IMG/VR virus record: IMGVR_UViG_3300042934_000547
Coordinates: 124,001-188,000 of that record
Length of the DNA stretch: 64,000 bases
Reading direction: 5' to 3' (one strand)
The notes under the pieces are model-generated. The model ran no database searches. It had not been told where the DNA came from and saw only the letters and a program-made list of their open reading frames with translations. Shown in pieces: positions 74 through 48,030 of the stretch. Made by a program: the position numbers and the translations under genes. The first letter of the stretch is position 1. Every line of letters begins with the position of its first letter.

Positions 74-1255
74 TTAATAAACATTCTTAGCATTATTCTG
101 TATAAATAAAGTAAAATACTTTAATGTAGCCTTTATATATTCATTTCTTGTACCTTCTCTACTGGTTTGCCTAAACTTAGCCGAGTTCGTTTCTATTAAA
201 GATATGAGTATCTCTTTAATTCTTATAACAGCATCGTTCTTTGTATTAGACTTAGTAGCTAAAGTATATGATAAGAAATTCAATGATGTACAATCCGGTG
301 TTTTACTATTAGCATAGTAATCCACTACTATGAGAGTCACAAGTTCCTTAATCAATCCATTATTGGATCTATTACTGATAATCCCACTCATTATATTTTT
401 AAATTCATTAGTCTTAATTTTTTCTCCAGAACAGGTCAATATCAAGTTGTAATCCATCCCTATTGAATTTAAACTATTGATTGTTTTTTCAATTAATCTT
501 CCGGCAGCTTTAGTATTACTATCAGATATGTGATAAGAATCAACTTCAAAACTATCACCATCATACGTCATATAAAGCTCATTATCATAAGCATCATAGA
601 ATAATTTAGCTATATTAACAACAAATCCTCCGATACGGGTACGCATCTGTTGTAGGATATATACAATATCATCATCTTGAAAATCCTTGAGCATCTTCTC
701 ATAGGTAGTAAAACACACTAATCCTCTAGATTTAAGTACACCTATAACCGTACCTTCAGTTTTTAAATCATATTTTTCAGTGAGCATTTTATTAACTACA
801 TAATCCATAACGTGTCTATTCTTATTAGGTTCGATTTTGAATGAATTGTAATGGATAGATGGATACATTCTACAAGCTAAGAATATGATGGATAACTCAT
901 AAAGTTTATCATCTTTCTTTTTAAATTTAAAGAATCTAATGATACACATCATTATTAATGACGTTGAATCTGTTATACTCGCTGTTTCCCAATCTTTGTT
1001 CGCATAATAGGTTTCTTTTATTAAACCTGCAATGAATTCATCAGTCAATTCAACTATTGACAATAATTCATCTATTTCTCTACGGGTAAATGGTATTCTA
1101 TCACACGGAGCACTGTCGTATAATGATTCCCTTCGTTCTTGAATATATCTCGATATAAGTTTCTTATATTTATCTATCGTTGAACTAGAAGAAAACTTTT
1201 TCTCTATTAATGGATATAATTTGGTTATAAATACTTTGGATGTATCAACACTCAT
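74..1255 (-). CDS. Hypothetical protein (393 aa, helical), late-type expression
   Basis: Long ORF, AAGGAGG RBS, GACA-N6-TA motif at 1284-1295. Confidence 0.6.
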   Translation of the reverse strand: MSVDTSKVFITKLYPLIEKKFSSSSTIDKYKKLISRYIQERRESLYDSAPCDRIPFTRREIDELLSIVELTDEFIAGLIKETYYANKDWETASITDSTSLIMMCIIRFFKFKKKDDKLYELSIIFLACRMYPSIHYNSFKIEPNKNRHVMDYVVNKMLTEKYDLKTEGTVIGVLKSRGLVCFTTYEKMLKDFQDDDIVYILQQMRTRIGGFVVNIAKLFYDAYDNELYMTYDGDSFEVDSYHISDSNTKAAGRLIEKTINSLNSIGMDYNLILTCSGEKIKTNEFKNIMSGIISNRSNNGLIKELVTLIVVDYYANSKTPDCTSLNFLSYTLATKSNTKNDAVIRIKEILISLIETNSAKFRQTSREGTRNEYIKATLKYFTLFIQNNAKNVY

Positions 1256-28607: not shown

Positions 28608-30107
28608 CTATGCATTTACTTTATTATAGAATTCAATTAATGAACGTTTGTATTCTGGATCATATTTATCTCTACCCAAATTGATAAAGTTGTTTAAGTT
28701 AACTAATGTATTCTTTGTTGGTAGGTAGTTAACGTATAACAATCCATCATTTCTGTTTATAATCATAGCTCTTCTTGGATTATAAACTAATAATGCTGTT
28801 TGATAGAACTTGTCGTTGATTATCAACTTAACGTTTAATACGTCACCGTCAAAGTCTGCTTGTAGTGATGGCAATATATCAAGTGGAACACCCATTGTGA
28901 AATTATAGCATATTCCAATAACATGCATTTGAATCATACTACCATATTCCAATGTAGGATTTCTGTTTATCATTACTGGAATTCCAAATGGGTATGAGTT
29001 GATAATACTATTAATGATACTTATCAATTCATAATTCTCTTTAAGTCTTCCAACACTCCATATCATGTAAGCATCATTAATACTGATACTTCTTCTATGT
29101 GCAATTATATTTATAATTTTCTGTTGCAACAAATCACACAATGTATAATATGATAGAGTTATTTGGTCAACCTTAAGTGAAGCATCTGGTTTGATAACAT
29201 TTCTTGCTGTAAAGTTATATTTACCACCATATGCTCTCCTTATCAATCCAGTTTTACCTGACAAAATTTCTTCAATATCTGCATATACGTTCATGAACTC
29301 ATCTTGAAGTTTTTGAAGATATTCAGGTATTGATGTTTTATATAGAGTTAATTTATTCCTGTTTATTCTAGCTGTATACATAGCCATATTATTAAAATTA
29401 CCATTGATATCATAATATTCTAATTGTATACCAGAGGTTTTTAATAATCTTAATAATGTAGTATAAACAGGTATACAGCTTGTAAATATTAAGTCTCTAT
29501 TCTTTATGATTTCTTCATATGCATCCTGTTTACTTTGGGTATTAGCCATTTTCTTATAAAATGTAATTATTTCATCGAATCGATTGATGAATTCATATAT
29601 CCCGATTCTAAAGAATGGTTCTTTATCTGGATCTGGAGTCTCTACCGGAATCTCAATTCCATCTGAGTTAAAGTTTTCATCTAGATTCATCATATTATTA
29701 AATGCTTTTTGACCAATAAAACTTTGTATAGTCTTATACATTATTGGATGAATTACTTTATATCCATGCTGTATTACCAACCATCCCGTATAAGCAAAAT
29801 TATCGTCAACAAATTTAACTTTAGTTTTACATTTCGGGCACAGTATTCCTTCATTACTACGTGAACGTAAATTACCACATTCACATTTGTGTCGATCGCC
29901 ATTTGGACTAATATCATCAACACCTCTACCATATCGACTAGAGAATATTCCATCTGGGTCTTTTAATGCTTTTTTGATACCTTGGGCACCAGTAATTATA
30001 AATCCGTTGTCTGTTTCTAAGTCTCGTTTACATTCTTCTTCAAAATTGATTTTTACCAATCTAGATTGGTATTCAATTTCGTTACTATGTCCGTAATCAT
30101 TATACAT
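28608..30107 (-). CDS. Phage multisubunit RNA polymerase beta-prime, N-terminal catalytic fragment (probably non-virion RNAP)
   Basis: GIFS, Zn finger CECG..CPKC, GKTGLIR, NRNPTL, ADFDGD catalytic loop; TATATTATA at 30188-30196. Confidence 0.92.
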   Translation of the reverse strand: MYNDYGHSNEIEYQSRLVKINFEEECKRDLETDNGFIITGAQGIKKALKDPDGIFSSRYGRGVDDISPNGDRHKCECGNLRSRSNEGILCPKCKTKVKFVDDNFAYTGWLVIQHGYKVIHPIMYKTIQSFIGQKAFNNMMNLDENFNSDGIEIPVETPDPDKEPFFRIGIYEFINRFDEIITFYKKMANTQSKQDAYEEIIKNRDLIFTSCIPVYTTLLRLLKTSGIQLEYYDINGNFNNMAMYTARINRNKLTLYKTSIPEYLQKLQDEFMNVYADIEEILSGKTGLIRRAYGGKYNFTARNVIKPDASLKVDQITLSYYTLCDLLQQKIINIIAHRRSISINDAYMIWSVGRLKENYELISIINSIINSYPFGIPVMINRNPTLEYGSMIQMHVIGICYNFTMGVPLDILPSLQADFDGDVLNVKLIINDKFYQTALLVYNPRRAMIINRNDGLLYVNYLPTKNTLVNLNNFINLGRDKYDPEYKRSLIEFYNKVNA

Positions 30108-30239: not shown

Positions 30240-30794
30240 ATGATATTCAAAAAATACAAAATAACATGTCCATTTGGACCACGTTCAATAAAGGTGAATG
30301 GTAAAGTTGATAATAGAAACCATAATGGTATTGATTTTGTAGCTATTGGAGATACAACCGTTTATTCCCCAATATCTGGTAAAGTGATAACCAGTCAATA
30401 CATTACAGATAAGAATAATAGTCTATGGCAATATGGAAATTATGTATGCATTCAAAGTGCCGATAATCATGTTCACTATTTCGCACATCTAGCATCGAGA
30501 TATGTTAGGGTTGGCGATTTTGTTCAGCAAGGTCAAAGTATAGGAGTTATGGGTAATACTGGATATAGTACTGGTGCCCATACACATTACGGTATAAAAA
30601 GTCCAGTTTCAAATAAATTTATCAATCCAATTGATTATTACAATACAGTTCGACAAGCTCAATCGATGGGTTCTGCATCACAAGGTAATTCAGGTGGATT
30701 AGATGTATTTGGATATAATAAACTAGAAAAAGGTATCCAAGATATAATGGCTATTTCAATAGAGCAAGCACTTAATCAAAGACTTAAAAAATAA
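30240..30794 (+). CDS. M23 family peptidoglycan endopeptidase
   Basis: HNGID, YGNYV, FAHL, GNTGYSTGAHTH. Confidence 0.92.
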   Translation: MIFKKYKITCPFGPRSIKVNGKVDNRNHNGIDFVAIGDTTVYSPISGKVITSQYITDKNNSLWQYGNYVCIQSADNHVHYFAHLASRYVRVGDFVQQGQSIGVMGNTGYSTGAHTHYGIKSPVSNKFINPIDYYNTVRQAQSMGSASQGNSGGLDVFGYNKLEKGIQDIMAISIEQALNQRLKK

Positions 30795-30828: not shown

Positions 30829-32025
30829 TTACCAAATTTTAGTCACATCAACGTCAAATATTCTTATTGTAGAGTCATGGAATTTTTTCATATTTTTCTG
30901 CATTATCGTATTAGGGTATCCAACTGTTGTCATACCTATTTTAGTAATTCCTATACGTTTAAATAATGTAGAAGAACATGTTTGACATATACCATCCTTA
31001 CATTCACACATAGAACTATAACGCATTTTGACTTTCTTCCCAATATATTTATTCATATTGTCGGTTGTTAATTCTACTAGTTTAGTTCCTTCGATTATAT
31101 ATCCATAAATCCAACCTCTAATATTTCCATCAGTCAGTGCTACATCAATATACCTGTCCGTGTGACAATCATTAGTTTCAGATTGCACAACATGTTGTAG
31201 AGCCCTTATGAATAACTTAACCCAGTATCCACCAATAGCAGTATTGTTTGATTTCGCATATACCCCTGCTACAAGTGAGTTACCAAATAAGACATATTCA
31301 TCTTTAGAGATTCCATCCATATATGAGCTAACCCCAACATCGAAACCTTTAACTGGATCTATATTTTTAATAGCACCCTTCATTATGTAAATATTCTTGA
31401 AATGGTTATCAATAGAACCTTTTGCACCAGATTTAAATTGTTCCAGTCCCTCATCATTTGGACCTAGGATATTTATAGCTTCATTAGTTAACTCTTTTTC
31501 AATCTTGTCTGATACCTTAAAGTCGCCTTTTTCTAAAGCTTCTTTATTCTCCTTGATAAGTTTCTTCTTCTTGGTTCTAATTTTATCAGAAACTCTAAAG
31601 AAGTTCTCAGAATAATGAGAAGATAGAACAAAAATAAATGATAAGAAAAATTGATATTTATCTTCATATCTAACGAGTTGTTCAGCTGTGATTTTATCCT
31701 CATTTAGTGCAAATGATAGTTTTTCATCAAGTTTCTCATATAATTTCTGAGTTAATGGTTCATTGATATATCCCAAAACATTACTCACATCTTCGATAAA
31801 GTATTTATTAAATACCCATATCCCGAGTGTGGTCTTACATGGTTTGGTATTCTTTTTAACTTTCCCATACTTTCCAGCAGGTATAATGATAGTGTCCTGT
31901 GGATCATATTTGCGAACTTCATTTAAGAATCCAAAGTTTTTAATAATGAATGTTCTAGTTACATCTTTTTCTTCAATATTTAAGAAGTAATTTAGAGTAG
32001 TTTTATCAGTTATCATTTTCGCCAT
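30829..32025 (-). CDS. Phage RNA polymerase beta-prime, C-terminal fragment (probably virion RNAP)
   Basis: TTLG..VFN, SGAKG, SYMDG, bridge-helix-like TAIGGY, DCHT, RYSSMC, GICQTC, MKKFH. Confidence 0.88.
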   Translation of the reverse strand: MAKMITDKTTLNYFLNIEEKDVTRTFIIKNFGFLNEVRKYDPQDTIIIPAGKYGKVKKNTKPCKTTLGIWVFNKYFIEDVSNVLGYINEPLTQKLYEKLDEKLSFALNEDKITAEQLVRYEDKYQFFLSFIFVLSSHYSENFFRVSDKIRTKKKKLIKENKEALEKGDFKVSDKIEKELTNEAINILGPNDEGLEQFKSGAKGSIDNHFKNIYIMKGAIKNIDPVKGFDVGVSSYMDGISKDEYVLFGNSLVAGVYAKSNNTAIGGYWVKLFIRALQHVVQSETNDCHTDRYIDVALTDGNIRGWIYGYIIEGTKLVELTTDNMNKYIGKKVKMRYSSMCECKDGICQTCSSTLFKRIGITKIGMTTVGYPNTIMQKNMKKFHDSTIRIFDVDVTKIW

Positions 32026-32041
32026 AACTATCACTCCTTAA

Positions 32042-35236: not shown

Positions 35237-35899
35237 TTGAATATGGAAGAATTAAATCAAATAATGAAACAAGAACCTATTAATGATAATCCGTTTTTGT
35301 ATTCACCAGAAGATGATATATCGATATTTTTTGCACAAACAAGAGAGACACTATACAATAGTGAATTATACAATAACTTCGTAAATAATGCTGTAAAAGT
35401 ATTCAGAAGTTCAAAAACTTACAAGAATTATAAGAGTTATTTAATGGAAATGGGATTGAATAGATGTCAGCATTTTAGTAATATAATTGCTGATGAAATG
35501 GCTGAGGTAGAATTACATCACAATATGCTTACATTACACGATATAGCTCTTATCATTTGTGAGCATGTTCTTAATACTATAGGTCAAATAACAACTTTCC
35601 AGTTACGTCAATTAATTAAAGAGGAACATAAGCAAAATCATGTGCAGATAGTAATGCTATCAAAAACGCCACATCAGATGTATACTAATACTGACCAAAT
35701 GTTTTACCATCCAGATAATACATTCGGAGATTGGGAATCATTCGTATTCAGATATAGATATGGAATTACATTTGATATAGCTAATAAACTTATTGCTTAT
35801 ATTGGATTAATACAGTCAGAAAAGAATTCATATGATAATAATGCTTTAAAATTAAGAGATGAGATATTGTCATTTGCTTATCAAAACGCAGAAATATAA
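35237..35899 (+). CDS. HNH-like (His-Me finger) protein, paralog of 45381..46154
   Basis: RC...ELHH..TLHDI...MLSKTPHQ. Confidence 0.55.
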   Translation: MNMEELNQIMKQEPINDNPFLYSPEDDISIFFAQTRETLYNSELYNNFVNNAVKVFRSSKTYKNYKSYLMEMGLNRCQHFSNIIADEMAEVELHHNMLTLHDIALIICEHVLNTIGQITTFQLRQLIKEEHKQNHVQIVMLSKTPHQMYTNTDQMFYHPDNTFGDWESFVFRYRYGITFDIANKLIAYIGLIQSEKNSYDNNALKLRDEILSFAYQNAEI

Positions 35900-37260: not shown

Positions 37261-38019
37261 CTAATAATATATTTTTGACAGAAACTTATTTAATTCTGTT
37301 AGTATCTTCTTATTATAACCAATTTTAATATTATTAACATCATCGCAAGTATTTACACCATACTTGTTATATATATTAAATTTGCTGGTATGATTAAGTT
37401 CTCTATAATAATTCACATTCAAACTTCTATTACTATATTGCTGATAAAAGAATCGTGAATTGACTATAGCTTGTGCTACATTACCCGTCATCACTAAGTA
37501 ATATATATGACATATAAAATCTAACATATAATCTTTATGTAATTCGAGAAATGTATCTTTTATACCCTTGATATCAAGTTTTTCTGTATCAGCCATAATA
37601 TCATATTGATAATACGTCTCTAATGCTCCAATCCTATTAAATAGATTATATCTGTTTTTCTCAATAAAATTAATGTTATCGAATTGTGTAACCATAGGTT
37701 TTCGATTTACCAGAAACACAGCATCATTCTTTACCGATAGTATGTCATCAGGTAGTATGTTATTTATTGAAATGAAGTTATCAACTACTTCTGTAAATCC
37801 ACTTGACAATGCTTCTGATAGCTCCTTATTATTTTGAATCAATAAACCAACCTTACGATTACGTTCTTCTTTGGGTAATATCTTTAATGCATCATACAAA
37901 TTATCTTCTATCAATCCATATCGTTTCATTACATTGATATTACCTTGTTGTATATCATATTCATAAATAAATTTATTAACAATGAATTCATAATTTGGAT
38001 TAATATAAAATTTGCCCAT
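37261..38019 (-). CDS. Minimal DNA-polymerase-palm-like protein
   Basis: Motif A-like YEYDIQQGN and motif C-like ILSVKNDAVF; 252 aa, no exonuclease domain. Confidence 0.55.
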   Translation of the reverse strand: MGKFYINPNYEFIVNKFIYEYDIQQGNINVMKRYGLIEDNLYDALKILPKEERNRKVGLLIQNNKELSEALSSGFTEVVDNFISINNILPDDILSVKNDAVFLVNRKPMVTQFDNINFIEKNRYNLFNRIGALETYYQYDIMADTEKLDIKGIKDTFLELHKDYMLDFICHIYYLVMTGNVAQAIVNSRFFYQQYSNRSLNVNYYRELNHTSKFNIYNKYGVNTCDDVNNIKIGYNKKILTELNKFLSKIYY

Positions 38020-39356: not shown

Positions 39357-39935
39357 TTATATCCTCCTTAATATTGGCACTTGTGAAGCTGTTTTGATGT
39401 CATTTACTTGATAGTTAACCTGCTTACACGCTAACTCAAATTGTGGGTTATCAATAACCTGATTGATGTAACCAAATCTACGTACTGCTTCAATATACAT
39501 TGATGGACTTATATCTCCTATTGCATAAGAAGATTCTAACATACGCAATCCAGCATATTTACCACCCTGATAATCTACATTCATTGAAGGTATACCAAGA
39601 ATAATATCGAAATTCTCTCGTATATAATTGTGTAGTATCTCCAAGTAACCCATGTCAAATTCATCCTGAGTTACATAAATAAATATTGGTTCACTAGAAC
39701 CTAATAATCTAACTAAAAATGGTTTAGCATCATCAAGTTGCTTTCTGAATAATCTATTAGCTTCAACAGCATTATCTTCTATTATAGCTGTTACGGCATC
39801 GACCATTGGTATTAGACAAGCTAAATCTGGTAATATAGTTACATTAGGGTGAGTCATTGTTATCGACTCATACCCTAATGCATATGCAACACTACCTACT
39901 GGTAGACTATTTAGATTCGTTATTATATTTATCAT
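39357..39935 (-). CDS. Hypothetical protein
   Basis: GAGGA RBS. Confidence 0.6.
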   Translation of the reverse strand: MINIITNLNSLPVGSVAYALGYESITMTHPNVTILPDLACLIPMVDAVTAIIEDNAVEANRLFRKQLDDAKPFLVRLLGSSEPIFIYVTQDEFDMGYLEILHNYIRENFDIILGIPSMNVDYQGGKYAGLRMLESSYAIGDISPSMYIEAVRRFGYINQVIDNPQFELACKQVNYQVNDIKTASQVPILRRI

Positions 39936-41619
39936 TTTGTTCCTCTTTCTTTAAATTCTTAACGAATATTGAGTTTGGATCATTAGCCATGTTTTGCAGA
40001 CGGTCCATTAATGATTCATCCTCATTGAGAGTTGGATTAATTGTATCCTGAATTTTTTGATAATCTTCATCTAATTCTACTGGAACAATATCATCGTCTT
40101 CATCGTCATCATTTTCTATAGATACGCAATTAAATGTATCTCCCTCGAAACTGTTAACAAATTCTTCTACCGACTCCTTTTTAAGTTTATTATCCATAAT
40201 TGTATAAATCGATTCATCAACATTTGAATCAGCCTTAATTTCTTCCGGTGTTTCCTTAATAATTTCACTACCTAAAATCTTACCAGTTGATGTATCAATT
40301 GTTGCACGTATTGTGATTCCATCACTTACAGCAGCTTTATCTTCTGCTTTTATTTTGATTTCATCCTTAGCAACAACCAGTTTGGAAAAATCTACTTTAT
40401 CACCCTTATCGATGACATTGTTATCTATAGGTTTCAAACTAATTTCATCTTTCATTCTTACCATTTCATTGTCTGCTACTAGTTTCAATTTAGTTCCAAC
40501 AACATCTTTCAACTTTGGAACTGAATCATACTCTTCCTGAGTAACAACTTTATCCTCTATTACAATCACTTTTTTTAGAGGAGTTATTTCTTCTTTTTTG
40601 GCAATAAATGATTGGTAATTTTTATTTACCTTTGGTTCCACTTCTAATAATCTAAATCCTTTTCCCTCATTTACTGTTTTTGTTTCTACATCATATTTAT
40701 GAGGAACTGGTCCATCAACTTTAGGTGCTACTAATTTGCTTATATCAATTTTGTCAACACCATCATCTAATTGGTTACTCTTTTCTCCGCCAACTTCCTT
40801 TATGATTTGGTCTCCACATCTCAAAATTATTCTTTCATTTGATTTCATTATTTTGTTTCCTCCTATTATTTTTATGGAATCTGTTTTAATACTTAAATCT
40901 CTTGCATTATATCTTCTTCCGCATTTATCACATATCAATTCATTAAATCCATCGTCATAACCAATATGTCCCATACACGGTGTTCTCGATGGATCTTCTC
41001 TTTTGACATGGGTACAAAATACTTTTCCACCATCCATTGGATAAACATATGGAAAATCTATTATACCCGGTCCTCTTTTGAATACAGCCCAATTCATAAA
41101 ATAATTGGTTCCAAAGTCTGCCATAACATATTTACCGATAAAGTAATTTGTTATTATATCATATACATCAGATGCTATGTTTAAGAACTCCTGAGTATGA
41201 GTTATAGGTCGACCACGTTCTGCTGACAGCATAGTACCTTCAGGTGCTACTTCAAATATTTTCGAACAGAATGGTTTTAACATCTGTTGATTAATAAATT
41301 CAGCTGGATTATCTGTCAACGCTGTATGATCGACTGGAACTTTTACTATTATATCATTAAATTCGATTGGTCTATATATAACTCTGTTTGTTCCAGATGC
41401 AAATTTAACAAATCCCCTCGCTGTCATTATCTTATCAATTGCATCTTTCTTTTTCTTGAGCTTACCTGAATATCTAATTGATGAAGCAATATCATGTAAA
41501 TTTACAAAGTCATTTGTACTAAATGCTTGAAATATACTAAATGATGGTTTTAATTCATCAAATTCTACTTCTGAAGGTAATTTAACCTTATTGTATATTC
41601 TATCTAGCAACACAATCAA
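39907..41619 (-). CDS. Protein-kinase-like domain plus Zn ribbon plus acidic low-complexity tail
   Basis: SGTNRVIY, IVKVP, NPAEF, ADFG...NW, IIDF; C...C...CDKC. Confidence 0.6.
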   Translation of the reverse strand: MIVLLDRIYNKVKLPSEVEFDELKPSFSIFQAFSTNDFVNLHDIASSIRYSGKLKKKKDAIDKIMTARGFVKFASGTNRVIYRPIEFNDIIVKVPVDHTALTDNPAEFINQQMLKPFCSKIFEVAPEGTMLSAERGRPITHTQEFLNIASDVYDIITNYFIGKYVMADFGTNYFMNWAVFKRGPGIIDFPYVYPMDGGKVFCTHVKREDPSRTPCMGHIGYDDGFNELICDKCGRRYNARDLSIKTDSIKIIGGNKIMKSNERIILRCGDQIIKEVGGEKSNQLDDGVDKIDISKLVAPKVDGPVPHKYDVETKTVNEGKGFRLLEVEPKVNKNYQSFIAKKEEITPLKKVIVIEDKVVTQEEYDSVPKLKDVVGTKLKLVADNEMVRMKDEISLKPIDNNVIDKGDKVDFSKLVVAKDEIKIKAEDKAAVSDGITIRATIDTSTGKILGSEIIKETPEEIKADSNVDESIYTIMDNKLKKESVEEFVNSFEGDTFNCVSIENDDDEDDDIVPVELDEDYQKIQDTINPTLNEDESLMDRLQNMANDPNSIFVKNLKKEEQNDKYNNESK

Positions 41620-43694: not shown

Positions 43695-44042
43695 TTATAT
43701 ACAAAAATAAGATAATGCTTCCTTAACTTCATCCGGTAAATTTGGCGGATAAGAGAAAAACATTCTATCTTTATTTACTACTATACCTAAATTTGGTTTA
43801 TATTCGGGCAACCCGAATAACCAGCTTCCTAATGTATTTACAGATACTTCATTACTGTCGTATTGTATCACAATTGGTTCATCAGTTTCAATTTTGGCGA
43901 AATAGATTTTGTTAAACTTTTTCTTAAAAACCTTTCTAATGTTCACCATTGTTTTTACATAGTTATCCTTAACAAACTCTGGTTTAATTTCTTTTCTGGA
44001 AGTTTGTTTAGATAAACCCCTCAAACAAATACTCTCTGTCAT
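43695..44042 (-). CDS. Hypothetical protein
   Basis: Overlaps the RNase H stop. Confidence 0.6.
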   Translation of the reverse strand: MTESICLRGLSKQTSRKEIKPEFVKDNYVKTMVNIRKVFKKKFNKIYFAKIETDEPIVIQYDSNEVSVNTLGSWLFGLPEYKPNLGIVVNKDRMFFSYPPNLPDEVKEALSYFCI

Positions 44043-44713
44043 ATATAACGCTCCTTACTAATCAATTTAATATAGTTTTCGACGATTTCCTTTTTCATGC
44101 TGTTATGAGAATCTGTTCTATCAGAACTATACTTATTATTCATATTGTCCTCGATAAGCAGATTTCTGGTAATTTTATCTATTTTATCGTTAAAATAAGA
44201 AATCTCTTTAATAAAATTAATATCTGTTATGTTTTGTTTATTTGATTTGTTGAATACATTTCTAGCATTCTCTAATGATGAATCACTCTGCTTCACATGA
44301 CCTTTTTGATGGTAAAATCTTAAATCTAAACCACTATCTAGTATTAATTTCATACAGTATATAAGTTTTTCTTGATTTTTAACAATCCCATTACCACCAT
44401 AGAAGTTTCCATCTTTAAATCTCCAATTATGTACCCATTCTCTCAAGCTATTTATACAAATTAATGAATCAGAAAAAATATTAAATTTGGTAGTACCATA
44501 CGTATTATGAAAGTTTTTTGCTATTTTGATACCCAAAATTATTCCTTCTAGTTCCCCTCTGTTATTTGTTGTGTCTGAAATCACTTTGCCAAAAGCATTA
44601 GTGTATTCTTTTGATTTTATAATAGCTCCTGCACATGAATATGTAGTACCCTTATATATTCTCACTGAGGCGTCGGTAAAAATATTTACCCTGTTTTCGT
44701 AATCTAATTTCAT
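44039..44713 (-). CDS. rnhA: Ribonuclease HI
   Basis: FTDAS, TNNRGEL, FSDS, KGH, NDKID; TATATTATA at 44744-44752. Confidence 0.9.
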   Translation of the reverse strand: MKLDYENRVNIFTDASVRIYKGTTYSCAGAIIKSKEYTNAFGKVISDTTNNRGELEGIILGIKIAKNFHNTYGTTKFNIFSDSLICINSLREWVHNWRFKDGNFYGGNGIVKNQEKLIYCMKLILDSGLDLRFYHQKGHVKQSDSSLENARNVFNKSNKQNITDINFIKEISYFNDKIDKITRNLLIEDNMNNKYSSDRTDSHNSMKKEIVENYIKLISKERYI

Positions 44714-44767: not shown

Positions 44768-45394
44768 TTATTCAGTACATAAATTGATATTTAAACTTTG
44801 TTTCAAAAATAAAGCTTGATTAAGAATCTGGTTGAAATTAGTCATTTCATTTAGATCGTTGCATTCTTCGATCACTGATTCTTTTGGAAGTAAAACGTAA
44901 ATGTTCTCAGGCTCAATATTATGATATTCTAAAAGTTGTGATACGCAATAGTCAATGTTCATATTTTGGTGCTCATTGATATAATTGTGTAATATTTCTC
45001 CCGGTATTATATATACATATCCCGGGTCATTCCCCAAATGAGTTTCTACTATTGGAATATTCTCTTCACTGTATATAAAAGTAGACACTTTAGATTCATC
45101 AGTGTTTAGACCATTACATATCTGAGAAGCTACTTCACTTAATGAAAGTCCAGTATTTCTAGATACCAACATCGCCGTTGTGTGATCTATATCCACGATG
45201 CTTGAAAAGTCTTCTTTTAATGAAGAAACAAAAGATATATCATTAAATACGTCTTTACCATTCCAAAACGGAATATTATAAGATTCATCAAGATATTGTT
45301 TCTTTATCGTTTCTATAACAGATGAATTTTCTCCAATAATTCCATTTATCAAATATTCAGTTTGTTTTAAATCATCCATATTATTTGTTGTCAT
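44768..45394 (-). CDS. Acidic hypothetical protein, possibly virion-associated
   Basis: Late-type operon. Confidence 0.55.
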   Translation of the reverse strand: MTTNNMDDLKQTEYLINGIIGENSSVIETIKKQYLDESYNIPFWNGKDVFNDISFVSSLKEDFSSIVDIDHTTAMLVSRNTGLSLSEVASQICNGLNTDESKVSTFIYSEENIPIVETHLGNDPGYVYIIPGEILHNYINEHQNMNIDYCVSQLLEYHNIEPENIYVLLPKESVIEECNDLNEMTNFNQILNQALFLKQSLNINLCTE

Positions 45395-46154
45395 CCTCCT
45401 TTTTTATTCTTATTATAGGACATGTGTTCATTAATTGCCCATACATTGAGTTTTGCGTAATTAATTTTCGTTCCTCTAATGTTTCTAGTAGATTATCGTA
45501 TGAAGAAACTTTATTCAACTCATGTTCCACATATAAATAATCCGTATCAAGGATATTATTATGCGGTGCTGAATGTGCCAAATACATAGCATCATAAGAT
45601 TTTTTCATGATGTATCTTTCCATAGCACTATCAGGAACATAAGCTCCATAAATTCTTAAAAATTCTTCATAGTTTCCCCTAACACTTGACATCGGGATCT
45701 GATAAAACTGATTATGAACTAATTCATGAGGAGTTTCTGATAATGGTATCAACCCTACCAATCCAATATAATGTAAATACGTAACTTCCATAGCAATCAT
45801 TTCAACTTCACAATTTTGACCTGAAGCTAAACGTTTATTATAGACTGTTTCAGATATATCATATAATGTAAATGGCTCATGATGAACGTGTATTTTAATT
45901 TTCCTGTTTTCCAGACAAGAAACATTTTGAAATATTGCACATCTATGGAACCCTTTATATTTCTTAAGAAATTCTATTATTTGTCTATATTCAAATGAAT
46001 TTCTACATACATATTCTATATCTTTAATAAATTTATCATATTGATTTGGTTCAGTTAAATCATAATCTATTTTGTCAAACTCCGGTATATTCTCGAGTTT
46101 TAAGGTACTAACTGCATGATTGGTATCAATACTTTTCTTTGCTACATATTTCAT
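45381..46154 (-). CDS. HNH-like (His-Me finger) protein
   Basis: RC...HVHHEPFTLYDI...LIPLSETPHELVHN. Confidence 0.6.
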   Translation of the reverse strand: MKYVAKKSIDTNHAVSTLKLENIPEFDKIDYDLTEPNQYDKFIKDIEYVCRNSFEYRQIIEFLKKYKGFHRCAIFQNVSCLENRKIKIHVHHEPFTLYDISETVYNKRLASGQNCEVEMIAMEVTYLHYIGLVGLIPLSETPHELVHNQFYQIPMSSVRGNYEEFLRIYGAYVPDSAMERYIMKKSYDAMYLAHSAPHNNILDTDYLYVEHELNKVSSYDNLLETLEERKLITQNSMYGQLMNTCPIIRIKKEDDNK

Positions 46155-46385: not shown

Positions 46386-47207
46386 TTAATGATTATGGTT
46401 ACATCCACACGATTGTTCACCAGTATGAACATGACCGCAATTACAGTCACGAGGTTCTCTAGTCTGAATTTGTGGATTTCTTATAATCGGACTACCTCCA
46501 ATAATGTAATTAATATATGTGGTTGTAAATAACAAAGTTGGATGATCATTACCACCCACAGTCAAAGTCATTTTTGTCATAAGATCATTTTCATCAAATT
46601 CATATTGGATATGTTTAGCCCCTGTAACAGATTCTTCCAGCACTTGACCTAAATCATTATCACGATATATCATGTGCGAAAGTTCATTACCATCTTCACC
46701 GATAACTATTTCACTCTTTTTGTTTGGTGAATTTGGATAAAACTCGCCTGTTACCTTAAACCCATCAATTTCAAATGAATATTTATCACCATCGATTTTA
46801 ATATCATATAACGTTTCAATCAAAGCTTCTTTATTTTCTGAATCTTGAGAATCTACCGAATGTTTAATCATTCTTATTGGTCTTTCTAATTCATTGAATT
46901 CAGTATCCATATAATTTAAATAAAGACTACCACTTCTAGTTGTTTCAGTAAATTTGCTTTTTGTAAGTTTGTTATTTTCGTCATAAAAATTTTCTGTTAT
47001 AGAACTCGGTTCAATTTTTCTAATTATTTTATCAGTATCTTGTAAATAACTAATTGTTTTTTGATTACCTACATAAATAGACGTTTCATCATTAATACGA
47101 ACAATTCTTCCGAGTTCATCAGTAAACATCAATGCGTGAAAGCATTCTCCTTCGTTTACAACCTTTCTTGTCACTAATATCTTTTTATTTGCTAAATTTT
47201 CATTCAT
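46386..47207 (-). CDS. Stand-alone YD-repeat-like early protein with His/Cys-rich tail
   Basis: TDELGRIVR, FYDENNKL, YEFDENDL; tail CNCGHVH...CGCNHNH; start moved to MNEN. Confidence 0.7.
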   Translation of the reverse strand: MNENLANKKILVTRKVVNEGECFHALMFTDELGRIVRINDETSIYVGNQKTISYLQDTDKIIRKIEPSSITENFYDENNKLTKSKFTETTRSGSLYLNYMDTEFNELERPIRMIKHSVDSQDSENKEALIETLYDIKIDGDKYSFEIDGFKVTGEFYPNSPNKKSEIVIGEDGNELSHMIYRDNDLGQVLEESVTGAKHIQYEFDENDLMTKMTLTVGGNDHPTLLFTTTYINYIIGGSPIIRNPQIQTREPRDCNCGHVHTGEQSCGCNHNH

Positions 47208-47225
47208 TTTATTACCCTTTCTTTG

Positions 47226-47273
47226 CCTCATTTTAGGATAAGATATGAGGTCTTACACATTATTTTCTTATCC
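47226..47273 (-). promoter_or_regulatory. Predicted 5'-leader pseudoknot, copy D
   Basis: S1 GGATAAGA/TCTTATCC, S2 CCTCAT/ATGAGG, AAATAA loop. Confidence 0.75.
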
Positions 47274-47340: not shown

Positions 47341-48030
47341 TTAATTAAAAATTCGGTTATAAAATGTAGTGGTGGTTTCTTCTGTATTATTATCTTTATG
47401 AGACACTTTCTTAGTTAATAATCCATTTTCGTCATATGTATATTTAGTTAACTTTCCATATTGACATGTTGAGTACCATTGATTTAATGGATTATCAATG
47501 TAAAAATTATGTATAACAACAGTATCTGTTTTTATTACCGTTGCTTTATATTCTTTCTTACGTGAAGAATTTGGGAAATAAGTAAAGTCCAATTTTCTGC
47601 CATTTATGATAAAAGTGTATGTATCATTAACTATAGTAGCATCCATGATTGTTTTTTCCTTTTTGGGATCTATATCACCAAAAATAGAATCAGTACTACC
47701 CTTAGTGATCTGTATTATTCTCCCTAACTCATCATATGAAAATATCCATATAAAAAGGTTTACACCATCTACGTCTTTTGTATACTCCCTACCTACTTCC
47801 AATTTACCGTTTTCATCATAGACATATTCGCCACACATTGTAGAACTTATTTTAATGATTTTGTCAGTATCATTGAAGTATTCGATATTTTCTGACGATC
47901 TCGTATACTTCTTTTCCCTCCTTACAATTCTACCGAGTCTATCGGTAAACATCAGTGAATGAAATTGTTCCTCACCATTATTCTTTCTCTTTGTTACCAA
48001 AATTACTTTCTTTTCCAAATTTTTGTTCAT
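47341..48030 (-). CDS. Stand-alone YD-repeat early protein (paralog of 46386..47207)
   Basis: FHSLMFTDRLGRIVR, YVYDENGKL, YDELGRI, YTYDENGLL; TATATTATA at 48087-48095. Confidence 0.75.
   Translation of the reverse strand: MNKNLEKKVILVTKRKNNGEEQFHSLMFTDRLGRIVRREKKYTRSSENIEYFNDTDKIIKISSTMCGEYVYDENGKLEVGREYTKDVDGVNLFIWIFSYDELGRIIQITKGSTDSIFGDIDPKKEKTIMDATIVNDTYTFIINGRKLDFTYFPNSSRKKEYKATVIKTDTVVIHNFYIDNPLNQWYSTCQYGKLTKYTYDENGLLTKKVSHKDNNTEETTTTFYNRIFN

Follow-up and report, generated by a model that had tools for sequence, protein, structure and literature searches.

A 252-residue jumbo-phage protein predicted to fold as a reduced family-B DNA polymerase core with both putative catalytic aspartates

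Family-B DNA polymerases (PolBs), such as Pol alpha, RB69/T4 gp43, KOD/Tgo, E. coli Pol II and phi29 DNA polymerase, combine a palm, fingers and thumb with N-terminal and 3'-5' exonuclease (DEDDy) domains and range from 572 residues (phi29) to more than 1,000 residues. The fold has also been recruited without catalysis: herpesvirus UL8, an accessory subunit of the helicase-primase of about 750 residues, is an inactivated PolB that has lost the catalytic residues. [quoted passage not shown] 2021, PMC7824862; Basu et al. 2026 preprint, PMC13648687), and a 2021 review states that no extra DNA polymerase has been described for these phages (PMC8150378). The PBS2-induced DNA polymerase has reportedly been purified with small subunits, an observation not used in the present interpretation. 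Here, we analysed a protein of 252 residues (P0001) encoded by a jumbo phage that belongs to the same supergroup. The protein is a member of phrog_21037, a true orthologous family, whose members AR9 gp238 (YP_009283143) and phiR1-37 g276 (YP_004934510) are annotated as 'hypothetical' or of 'unknown function', and no paper describing this family was found in the literature library searched.

The gene resides in a stretch of 64,000 nucleotides (the window; about 30% G+C), which corresponds to C1:124001-188000 of a complete virus record (G000) of 231,975 bp with direct terminal repeats. The window carries split multisubunit RNA polymerase genes, an ADFDGD-bearing beta' part at 28608-30107 and phrog_2962 at 30829-32034, and the phage is therefore an RNAP-encoding jumbo phage. 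An earlier note, which was based on the sequence alone, had proposed a stand-alone polymerase-palm-like protein of 252 residues at 37261-38019, with two aspartates and without a proofreading domain. This observation was confirmed, although the open reading frame is located on the minus strand and the plus strand is full of stops. All four peptides named in the note are present, IYEYDIQQGN at residues 18-27, ERNRKVGLL at 52-60, ILSVKNDAVF at 93-102 and IKGI at 150-153, and the predicted secondary structure matches the description given there. The start codon overlaps the stop codon of the upstream ORF (TAATG) and the next ORF starts 10 nt after the TAG stop, so that the gene lies inside a tightly packed operon. 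It is present as a single copy in the genome. The features of the gene and one context gene are as follows (window coordinates).

37261..38019, minus strand: complete gene for the 252-residue PolB-like protein, stop codon included.
37927..37968, minus strand: motif-A-like segment, residues 18-31 (I-x-E-Y-D22-I-x-x-A-[N/G]-I-[N/S]-I-L); D22 (37954-37956), at the end of strand 12-23, is the putative metal ligand, and the position of the PolB steric-gate Tyr holds Asn/Gly.
37846..37872, minus strand: motif-B-like segment on the stub fingers helix, residues 50-58 ([K/R]50-x-x-R53-[Q/N/E]54-x-x-x-G58), assigned from spacing only.
37714..37743, minus strand: motif-C-like beta-hairpin, residues 93-102 ([IV]-L-S-I-K97-[K/N]-D99-A-[IV]-F); D99 (37723-37725) is the putative second metal ligand, and the first Asp of the canonical DTD is Lys.
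37648..37668, minus strand: KxY-like strand, residues 118-124 (F118-x-x-K121-N122-x-Y124).
37555..37575, minus strand: D149-[V/I]-K151-G152-I153-x-D155 segment at the palm-thumb junction, resembling the (K/R)-G-(L/I) motif of PolBs.
37264..37554, minus strand: helical thumb-like C-terminal domain, residues 156-252, with conserved H161, Y195, Y205-R206, S212 and N236.
44039..44713, minus strand: RNase H gene about 6 kb upstream (PF00075, E 5e-14; phrog_531), context only.

Sequence-based methods did not provide a function. A Pfam search with the protein and with 120 family members gave nothing relevant, with no score above the gathering thresholds of PF00136 or PF03175, and sequence and profile searches of the PDB returned only chance hits (SRP72, EF-hand). 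The PHROGs search identified phrog_21037, 'unknown function', over the full length (E 9.6e-35; residues 5-238 against profile positions 11-245 of 257). A tblastn search of 50,697 phage records found homologs only in Bacillus AR9/PBS1-type phages, Yersinia phiR1-37, Staphylococcus S6/MarsHill-type phages, Listeria LPJP1 and Fusobacterium JD-Fnp jumbo phages, every one annotated as 'hypothetical'. A word search gave six metagenomic relatives, with homologs at E 1e-40, whereas a large profile search returned 1,226 cluster representatives (clusters at 50% identity) at E<=1e-3, 670 of them at E<=1e-30. The 150 best that were listed are nearly all 250-285 residues long, with no longer fused forms among them. 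Thus, the gene is real and not a chance ORF, and it belongs to a family of at least 1,226 clusters that is common in gut and rumen viromes and completely unannotated.

Structural modeling was more informative. An AlphaFold model based on 7 sequences reached a pLDDT of 89.6 and a pTM of 0.83, and a second model from an independent alignment of 120 sequences reached a pLDDT of 97.3 and a pTM of 0.91 with identical secondary structure. A Foldseek search of the PDB returned only family-B DNA polymerases and HSV UL8 (E about 2e-5 to 3e-4). Similarly, an exhaustive alignment of the first model to 48,161 representative PDB chains placed human Pol alpha (Z 11.2), RB69 gp43 (10.9), HSV-1 UL8 (10.7), HSV polymerase (10.3), Pol II (8.9) and phi29 (8.9) on top, while unrelated helical matches scored Z 6 or less and the family-A polymerases Pol nu and apPol reached only Z 5.6 and 5.7 with about 122-124 residues aligned. 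With the second model, 150 chains scored Z>=8 and all of the top 50 are PolBs or UL8, with 190-243 of 252 residues aligned (about 215-243 for all but two HSV polymerase entries) and the best Z scores at 11-11.6 with about 235-243 residues aligned. Model residues 2..252 map to Pol alpha 842..1229, KOD 387..750, RB69 394..894 and Pol II 402..770. Searches of BFVD and the ESM Atlas retrieved the protein's own uncharacterised phage family first (TM 0.8-0.9; TM 0.80 to G4KKL4, a 253-residue protein which is probably identical to phiR1-37 g276), followed by UL8-type proteins, which rank directly after the own family in BFVD, and by PolB clusters (TM 0.69-0.73 by query). The whole predicted structure therefore corresponds to the palm, fingers and thumb of a PolB, with the fingers inserted after the first palm strand and helix, shrunk to about 250 residues.

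Conservation was scored in 155 representatives that share about 30-38% identity with the query. D22, G58 and D99 are 100% conserved, E20, F118, K151, Y205, R206 and N236 are conserved to 99%, H161 to 98%, and I18, Y21, A26, N86, A100, Y124, G152 and Y195 to 95-97% (Y21, A26 and Y124 95%, A100 and G152 97%). K/R50 and R53 are each conserved to 93%, K121 to 86% and N122 to 82%. In the models, D22 ends the first long strand (12-23), helices 50-62 and 65-85 follow, D99 sits in the turn of the hairpin 93-97/100-104, K121-N-x-Y124 lies on strand 116-130, and K151-G152 closes strand 145-151 before the C-terminal helices (155-251). This is the canonical PolB order of motif A, fingers, motif C, KxY, (K/R)-G and thumb. 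In each of the full-length templates Pol alpha, KOD, RB69 and Pol II the structural alignment starts 17-18 residues before the motif-A Asp, which matches D22 at 20 residues after model residue 2. The segment [K/R]50-x3-[Q/N/E]54-x3-G58 has the same spacing as PolB motif B (K-x3-N-S-x-Y-G), but S and Y are missing and the mapping rests on spacing alone. All motif equivalences are based on fold, order and spacing and not on a residue-level superposition, and the proximity of D22 and D99, which the note had named as critical, is inferred from the structural alignments only.

The departures from canonical PolBs are clear. The D-x-D signature of motif C, the apomorphy of PolB, reads K97-[K/N]-D99 with Lys (85%) or Arg (10%) in place of the first Asp, and the position of the steric-gate Tyr (S-L-Y-P-S), five residues after D22, is occupied by Asn (63%) or Gly (35%). 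The fingers are nearly deleted and reduced to a short two-helix stub. The protein begins 20 residues before motif A and has no N-terminal or exonuclease domain, and the only PF03104 hit in the genome belongs to the N part of the replicative PolB. No sequence-profile similarity to PolB was detected, as hhalign of the family against the C part of the phage's own PolB, alone (probability below 1%) or as a 21-sequence PolB-C profile, gave no signal. Homology is thus supported by the fold and these short, ordered motifs only, and we regard the protein as working like, and derived from, a PolB polymerase domain rather than as a canonical member.

The protein is not part of the replicase. The genome has no PolA (PF00476 is absent), and its replicative PolB is split into two distant ORFs on opposite strands: an N part of 659 residues with the exonuclease domain and motif A (D-F-D-I-K-S-E-Y-P-N), and a C part of 714 residues with motif B (K-L-D-A-N-G-I-Y-G), motif C (S-D-T-D-S), KxY (A-K-S-Y-A) and E-I-K-G-L. 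This fits the published description of group 1 jumbo phages (PMC7824862, PMC13648687). Nothing is missing from that enzyme, so that the 252-residue protein is a third, separate gene that carries a whole palm by itself, although its motif A ([D/E]-[F/Y]-D-I) and I-K-G-[L/I] motif look similar to those of the split PolB. The note stated that no primase is visible, which is correct for the window, but the genome encodes a DnaG/T7-type primase outside of it (C1:1365-2402). This protein is a homolog of the annotated AR9 primase (phrog_19847 'DNA primase', E 7e-41), and an alignment of 27 homologs shows a CHC2-type zinc finger and Toprim E...DxD signatures, although the Pfam Toprim_2 and Prim-Pol models miss it. 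The family profile finds AR9 (E 7e-60) but nothing in phiKZ, 201phi2-1, EL or SPN3US, and the primase has the same pattern, being present in phiR1-37 and absent from those four. Among 29 related viral genomes carrying the family, 27 have the PolB C part and 27 have the primase; of the two exceptions, one has a Pfam PolB hit and the other is only 85% complete.

Taken together, the interpretation given in the note is supported, with some corrections. The 'A/B-family-like' assignment resolves to family B, the protein is 'minimal' and not 'split', and a role in priming is weakened by the presence of the primase; in particular, the idea that it is the missing primase of group 1 jumbo phages is weakened further by its absence from the four phiKZ-type phages. 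Our analysis demonstrates the fold at the level of the models, the size, narrow length range and lineage restriction of the family, the invariance of the two carboxylates at the positions of the PolB metal ligands, the conservation of further basic and aromatic residues at the places of motif B, KxY and the K-G motif, the independence from a complete, split replicative PolB, and a replication-like expression profile in AR9, whereas catalysis and the cellular role are inferred. With moderate confidence, it might be hypothesized that the protein is a catalytically active, non-proofreading, template-dependent nucleotidyltransferase in which D22 and D99 would hold two Mg2+ ions, K/R50 and R53 would bind the incoming triphosphate, K121/Y124 and K151 would hold the primer terminus, and the thumb would grip the duplex. 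As the steric-gate Tyr is replaced by Asn/Gly, it may discriminate poorly between dNTPs and rNTPs. Its most probable function would be accessory synthesis during phage DNA replication or repair, either by extending primers made by the DnaG-type primase or by filling gaps left after RNase H removes primers. If active, the protein may be the smallest polymerase of this type and would set a new lower size limit for family B, less than half of phi29 polymerase, showing which parts of the fold are dispensable for catalysis, which is of interest for both polymerase evolution and enzyme engineering. It would also add a second polymerase to the replication machinery of the AR9/PBS1-phiR1-37 lineage, and the family would mark a clear difference from the nucleus-forming phiKZ lineage, in four phages of which it was not found. 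A more far-reaching scenario, which is not excluded but appears unlikely on present evidence, is that this smallest self-sufficient PolB works with the primase as a bacterial-virus analogue of Pol alpha-primase, taking over primase-made primers, or itself adding ribo- or deoxyribonucleotides, before hand-off to the split replicative PolB.

Among the alternatives, a non-catalytic, PolB-derived scaffold similar to UL8 survives best, but is considered unlikely. In this view, the protein would bridge the phage primase, helicase or replicative polymerase, and the conserved aspartates would serve metal or partner binding. UL8 is an equally good structural match (Z 10.7-11.2), is likewise a viral PolB-derived protein without exonuclease function, several canonical catalytic features are lost, and the primase has the same phyletic distribution. 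In contrast, inactivated polymerases such as UL8 are defined by loss of the catalytic carboxylates, while D22 and D99 are invariant in the 155 diverged representatives, together with basic residues at the triphosphate and primer-terminus positions. A complex prediction of RNase H and the primase with the 252-residue protein as the scored partner gave a median ipSAE of 0.33 (runs 0.07, 0.33 and 0.54) against 0.00 for the best of three controls, with a partner pLDDT of at least 82 and runs agreeing in at least 55% of contacts, and the score fell to 0.00 when the primase chain was replaced, which weakly hints at a primase contact. The mark was reached by 58 of 80 solved complexes and 2 of 110 mismatched pairs, but by the calibration of the method scores of 0.60 or under are more often wrong than right, and we treat this weak signal as a lead only and not as evidence of binding.

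Less likely still is a PolB-derived enzyme with unusual chemistry, such as rNTP-using primer synthesis or extension (a primase- or piPolB-like role) or template-independent 3'-end tailing. T7 RNA polymerase has Gly at the homologous motif-A position, and small residues there let PolBs use rNTPs; moreover, the fingers are almost absent, so that template and nucleotide selection must differ from canonical PolBs. Primpol-like behaviour has been raised for group 1 jumbo-phage polymerases (PMC7824862). However, no primase is missing in the phage or in 27 of the 29 related genomes, and the family is absent from the four phiKZ-type phages, which are the ones that lack a known primase. A virion or morphogenesis protein with an incidental polymerase-like fold is improbable: although an approximately 800-residue 'virion structural protein' (phrog_20751) lies about 2-4 kb downstream in 65 of 80 related loci, with the same order in the window, and the AR9 homolog has a late promoter, neither AR9 gp238 nor phiR1-37 g276 is flagged as a virion protein while their neighbours are, the AR9 transcripts are already present at the first time point, unlike those of virion genes, and a structural role would leave the invariant active-site-like residues unexplained. 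A detached fragment or decaying duplicate of the replicative PolB, as might be suggested by the similar motifs and the further breakage of that enzyme in some relatives, is effectively refuted by the completeness of the two PolB ORFs, the full set of palm motifs in order, the constant length among the 150 best representatives, the conservation at about 35% mean identity and the lack of residual similarity to PolB-C by hhalign.

Expression data are available for the AR9 homolog. The AR9 transcriptome study (PMC5312081) numbers genes one higher than the RefSeq locus tags, and RefSeq gp238 is therefore g239 of that study. It has its own late-promoter TSS at 205185 (Table S3), and its expression values are 60.7, 308.8 and 1533 at the three time points, whereas virion genes read about 0.3-2 at the first. 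This is the 'continuous' pattern that the authors ascribe to replication and nucleotide-metabolism genes. The cultured carriers of the family include the dU-DNA phages AR9/PBS1 and phiR1-37, but the genome analysed here has neither an AR9-type dCTP deaminase homolog nor ThyA, and a link to uracil-DNA was not used in the interpretation.

Eighty viral loci show a conserved local order that matches the window. In the orientation of the gene, this order comprises RNase H (within 6 kb in 37 of 80 loci), an approximately 550-residue protein (73 of 80), an approximately 220-residue protein (67 of 80), an approximately 165-residue protein (40 of 80), the PolB-like protein, small membrane ORFs, phrog_12252 on the opposite strand (66 of 80), the approximately 800-residue virion protein (65 of 80), an approximately 274-residue protein and the RNAP beta' C part. 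Most conserved neighbours are virion genes or genes of unknown function, and the synteny may only reflect common descent of the phages, since the AR9 and phiR1-37 contexts differ. Even so, an RNase H also lies within 600 bp of the AR9 homolog. In bacterial assemblies no defence-island or chromosomal context was observed, and the family occurs only in gut and rumen MAGs, several on contigs of 245-258 kb that are binned jumbo phages.

Outside the window, the phage genome (record G000, contig C1) encodes a 345-aa protein at C1:1365-2402 (locus L088 1365-2402) which is homologous to the annotated primase of AR9 (phrog_19847, E 7e-41). While the Pfam Toprim_2 and Prim-Pol models miss this protein, an alignment of 27 homologs reveals a CHC2 zinc finger and Toprim E...DxD signatures. 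The protein is present in phiR1-37 and in 27 of 29 related genomes, but was undetected in phiKZ, 201phi2-1, EL and SPN3US. The published statement that group 1 jumbo phages lack a DnaG-type primase therefore does not hold for this sub-lineage. The replicative family-B polymerase of the same genome is split between motif A and motif B into two ORFs of 659 and 714 aa, which are located about 13 kb apart on opposite strands, at C1:about 97.5-99.5 kb on the minus strand (locus L005) and at C1:83138-85282 on the plus strand (locus L004). In relatives, the C part resides in frames of about 1,300 aa (genomes G020 and G021), which are possibly unsplit, or is broken further (genomes G001, G005, G014 and G015).

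Within the window, the following genes were identified in addition to that of the mini-PolB, the predicted miniature family-B-type polymerase:

28608-30107, minus strand: split multisubunit RNA polymerase gene, beta' N part with the ADFDGD motif (PF00623)
30240-30794, plus strand: Peptidase_M23 gene (E 3e-23)
30829-32034, minus strand: split multisubunit RNA polymerase gene, phrog_2962 'RNA polymerase beta subunit' part
35237-35899, plus strand: first phrog_12252 paralog (E 2e-22)
39907-41619, minus strand: 570-aa protein with no family hit
44039-44713, minus strand: RNase H, 224 aa (PF00075, E 5e-14)
45381-46154, minus strand: second phrog_12252 paralog (E 2e-37)
46386-47231, minus strand: first of two tandem paralogs
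47341-48030, minus strand: second of two tandem paralogs

The Peptidase_M23 gene lies between the two RNA polymerase parts, on the other strand. The two paralogs of phrog_12252, a family annotated as being of unknown function, flank the block that holds the mini-PolB, and the first of them is conserved on the opposite strand in 66 of 80 related loci. The gene for the 570-aa protein is located upstream of the mini-PolB in 73 of 80 related loci; the N-terminal 240 residues or so of this protein are conserved (48% identity to the best relative), while its C-terminal half is acidic and low in complexity. The RNase H gene is located about 6 kb upstream of the mini-PolB on the same strand, and its product is too short to include the clamp-like domain of the chimallivirus Rhc protein described in the 2026 preprints. 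The tandem paralogs, which are of unknown function, share 39% identity over 215 residues, and the second has a weak RHS-repeat match.

With regard to the AR9 record NC_031039.1 (205236-206003), it should be noted that the gene numbers in the AR9 transcriptome paper (PMC5312081) are one higher than the RefSeq locus tags, so that g239 of that paper corresponds to BI022_gp238, which is easily misread when expression data are looked up.
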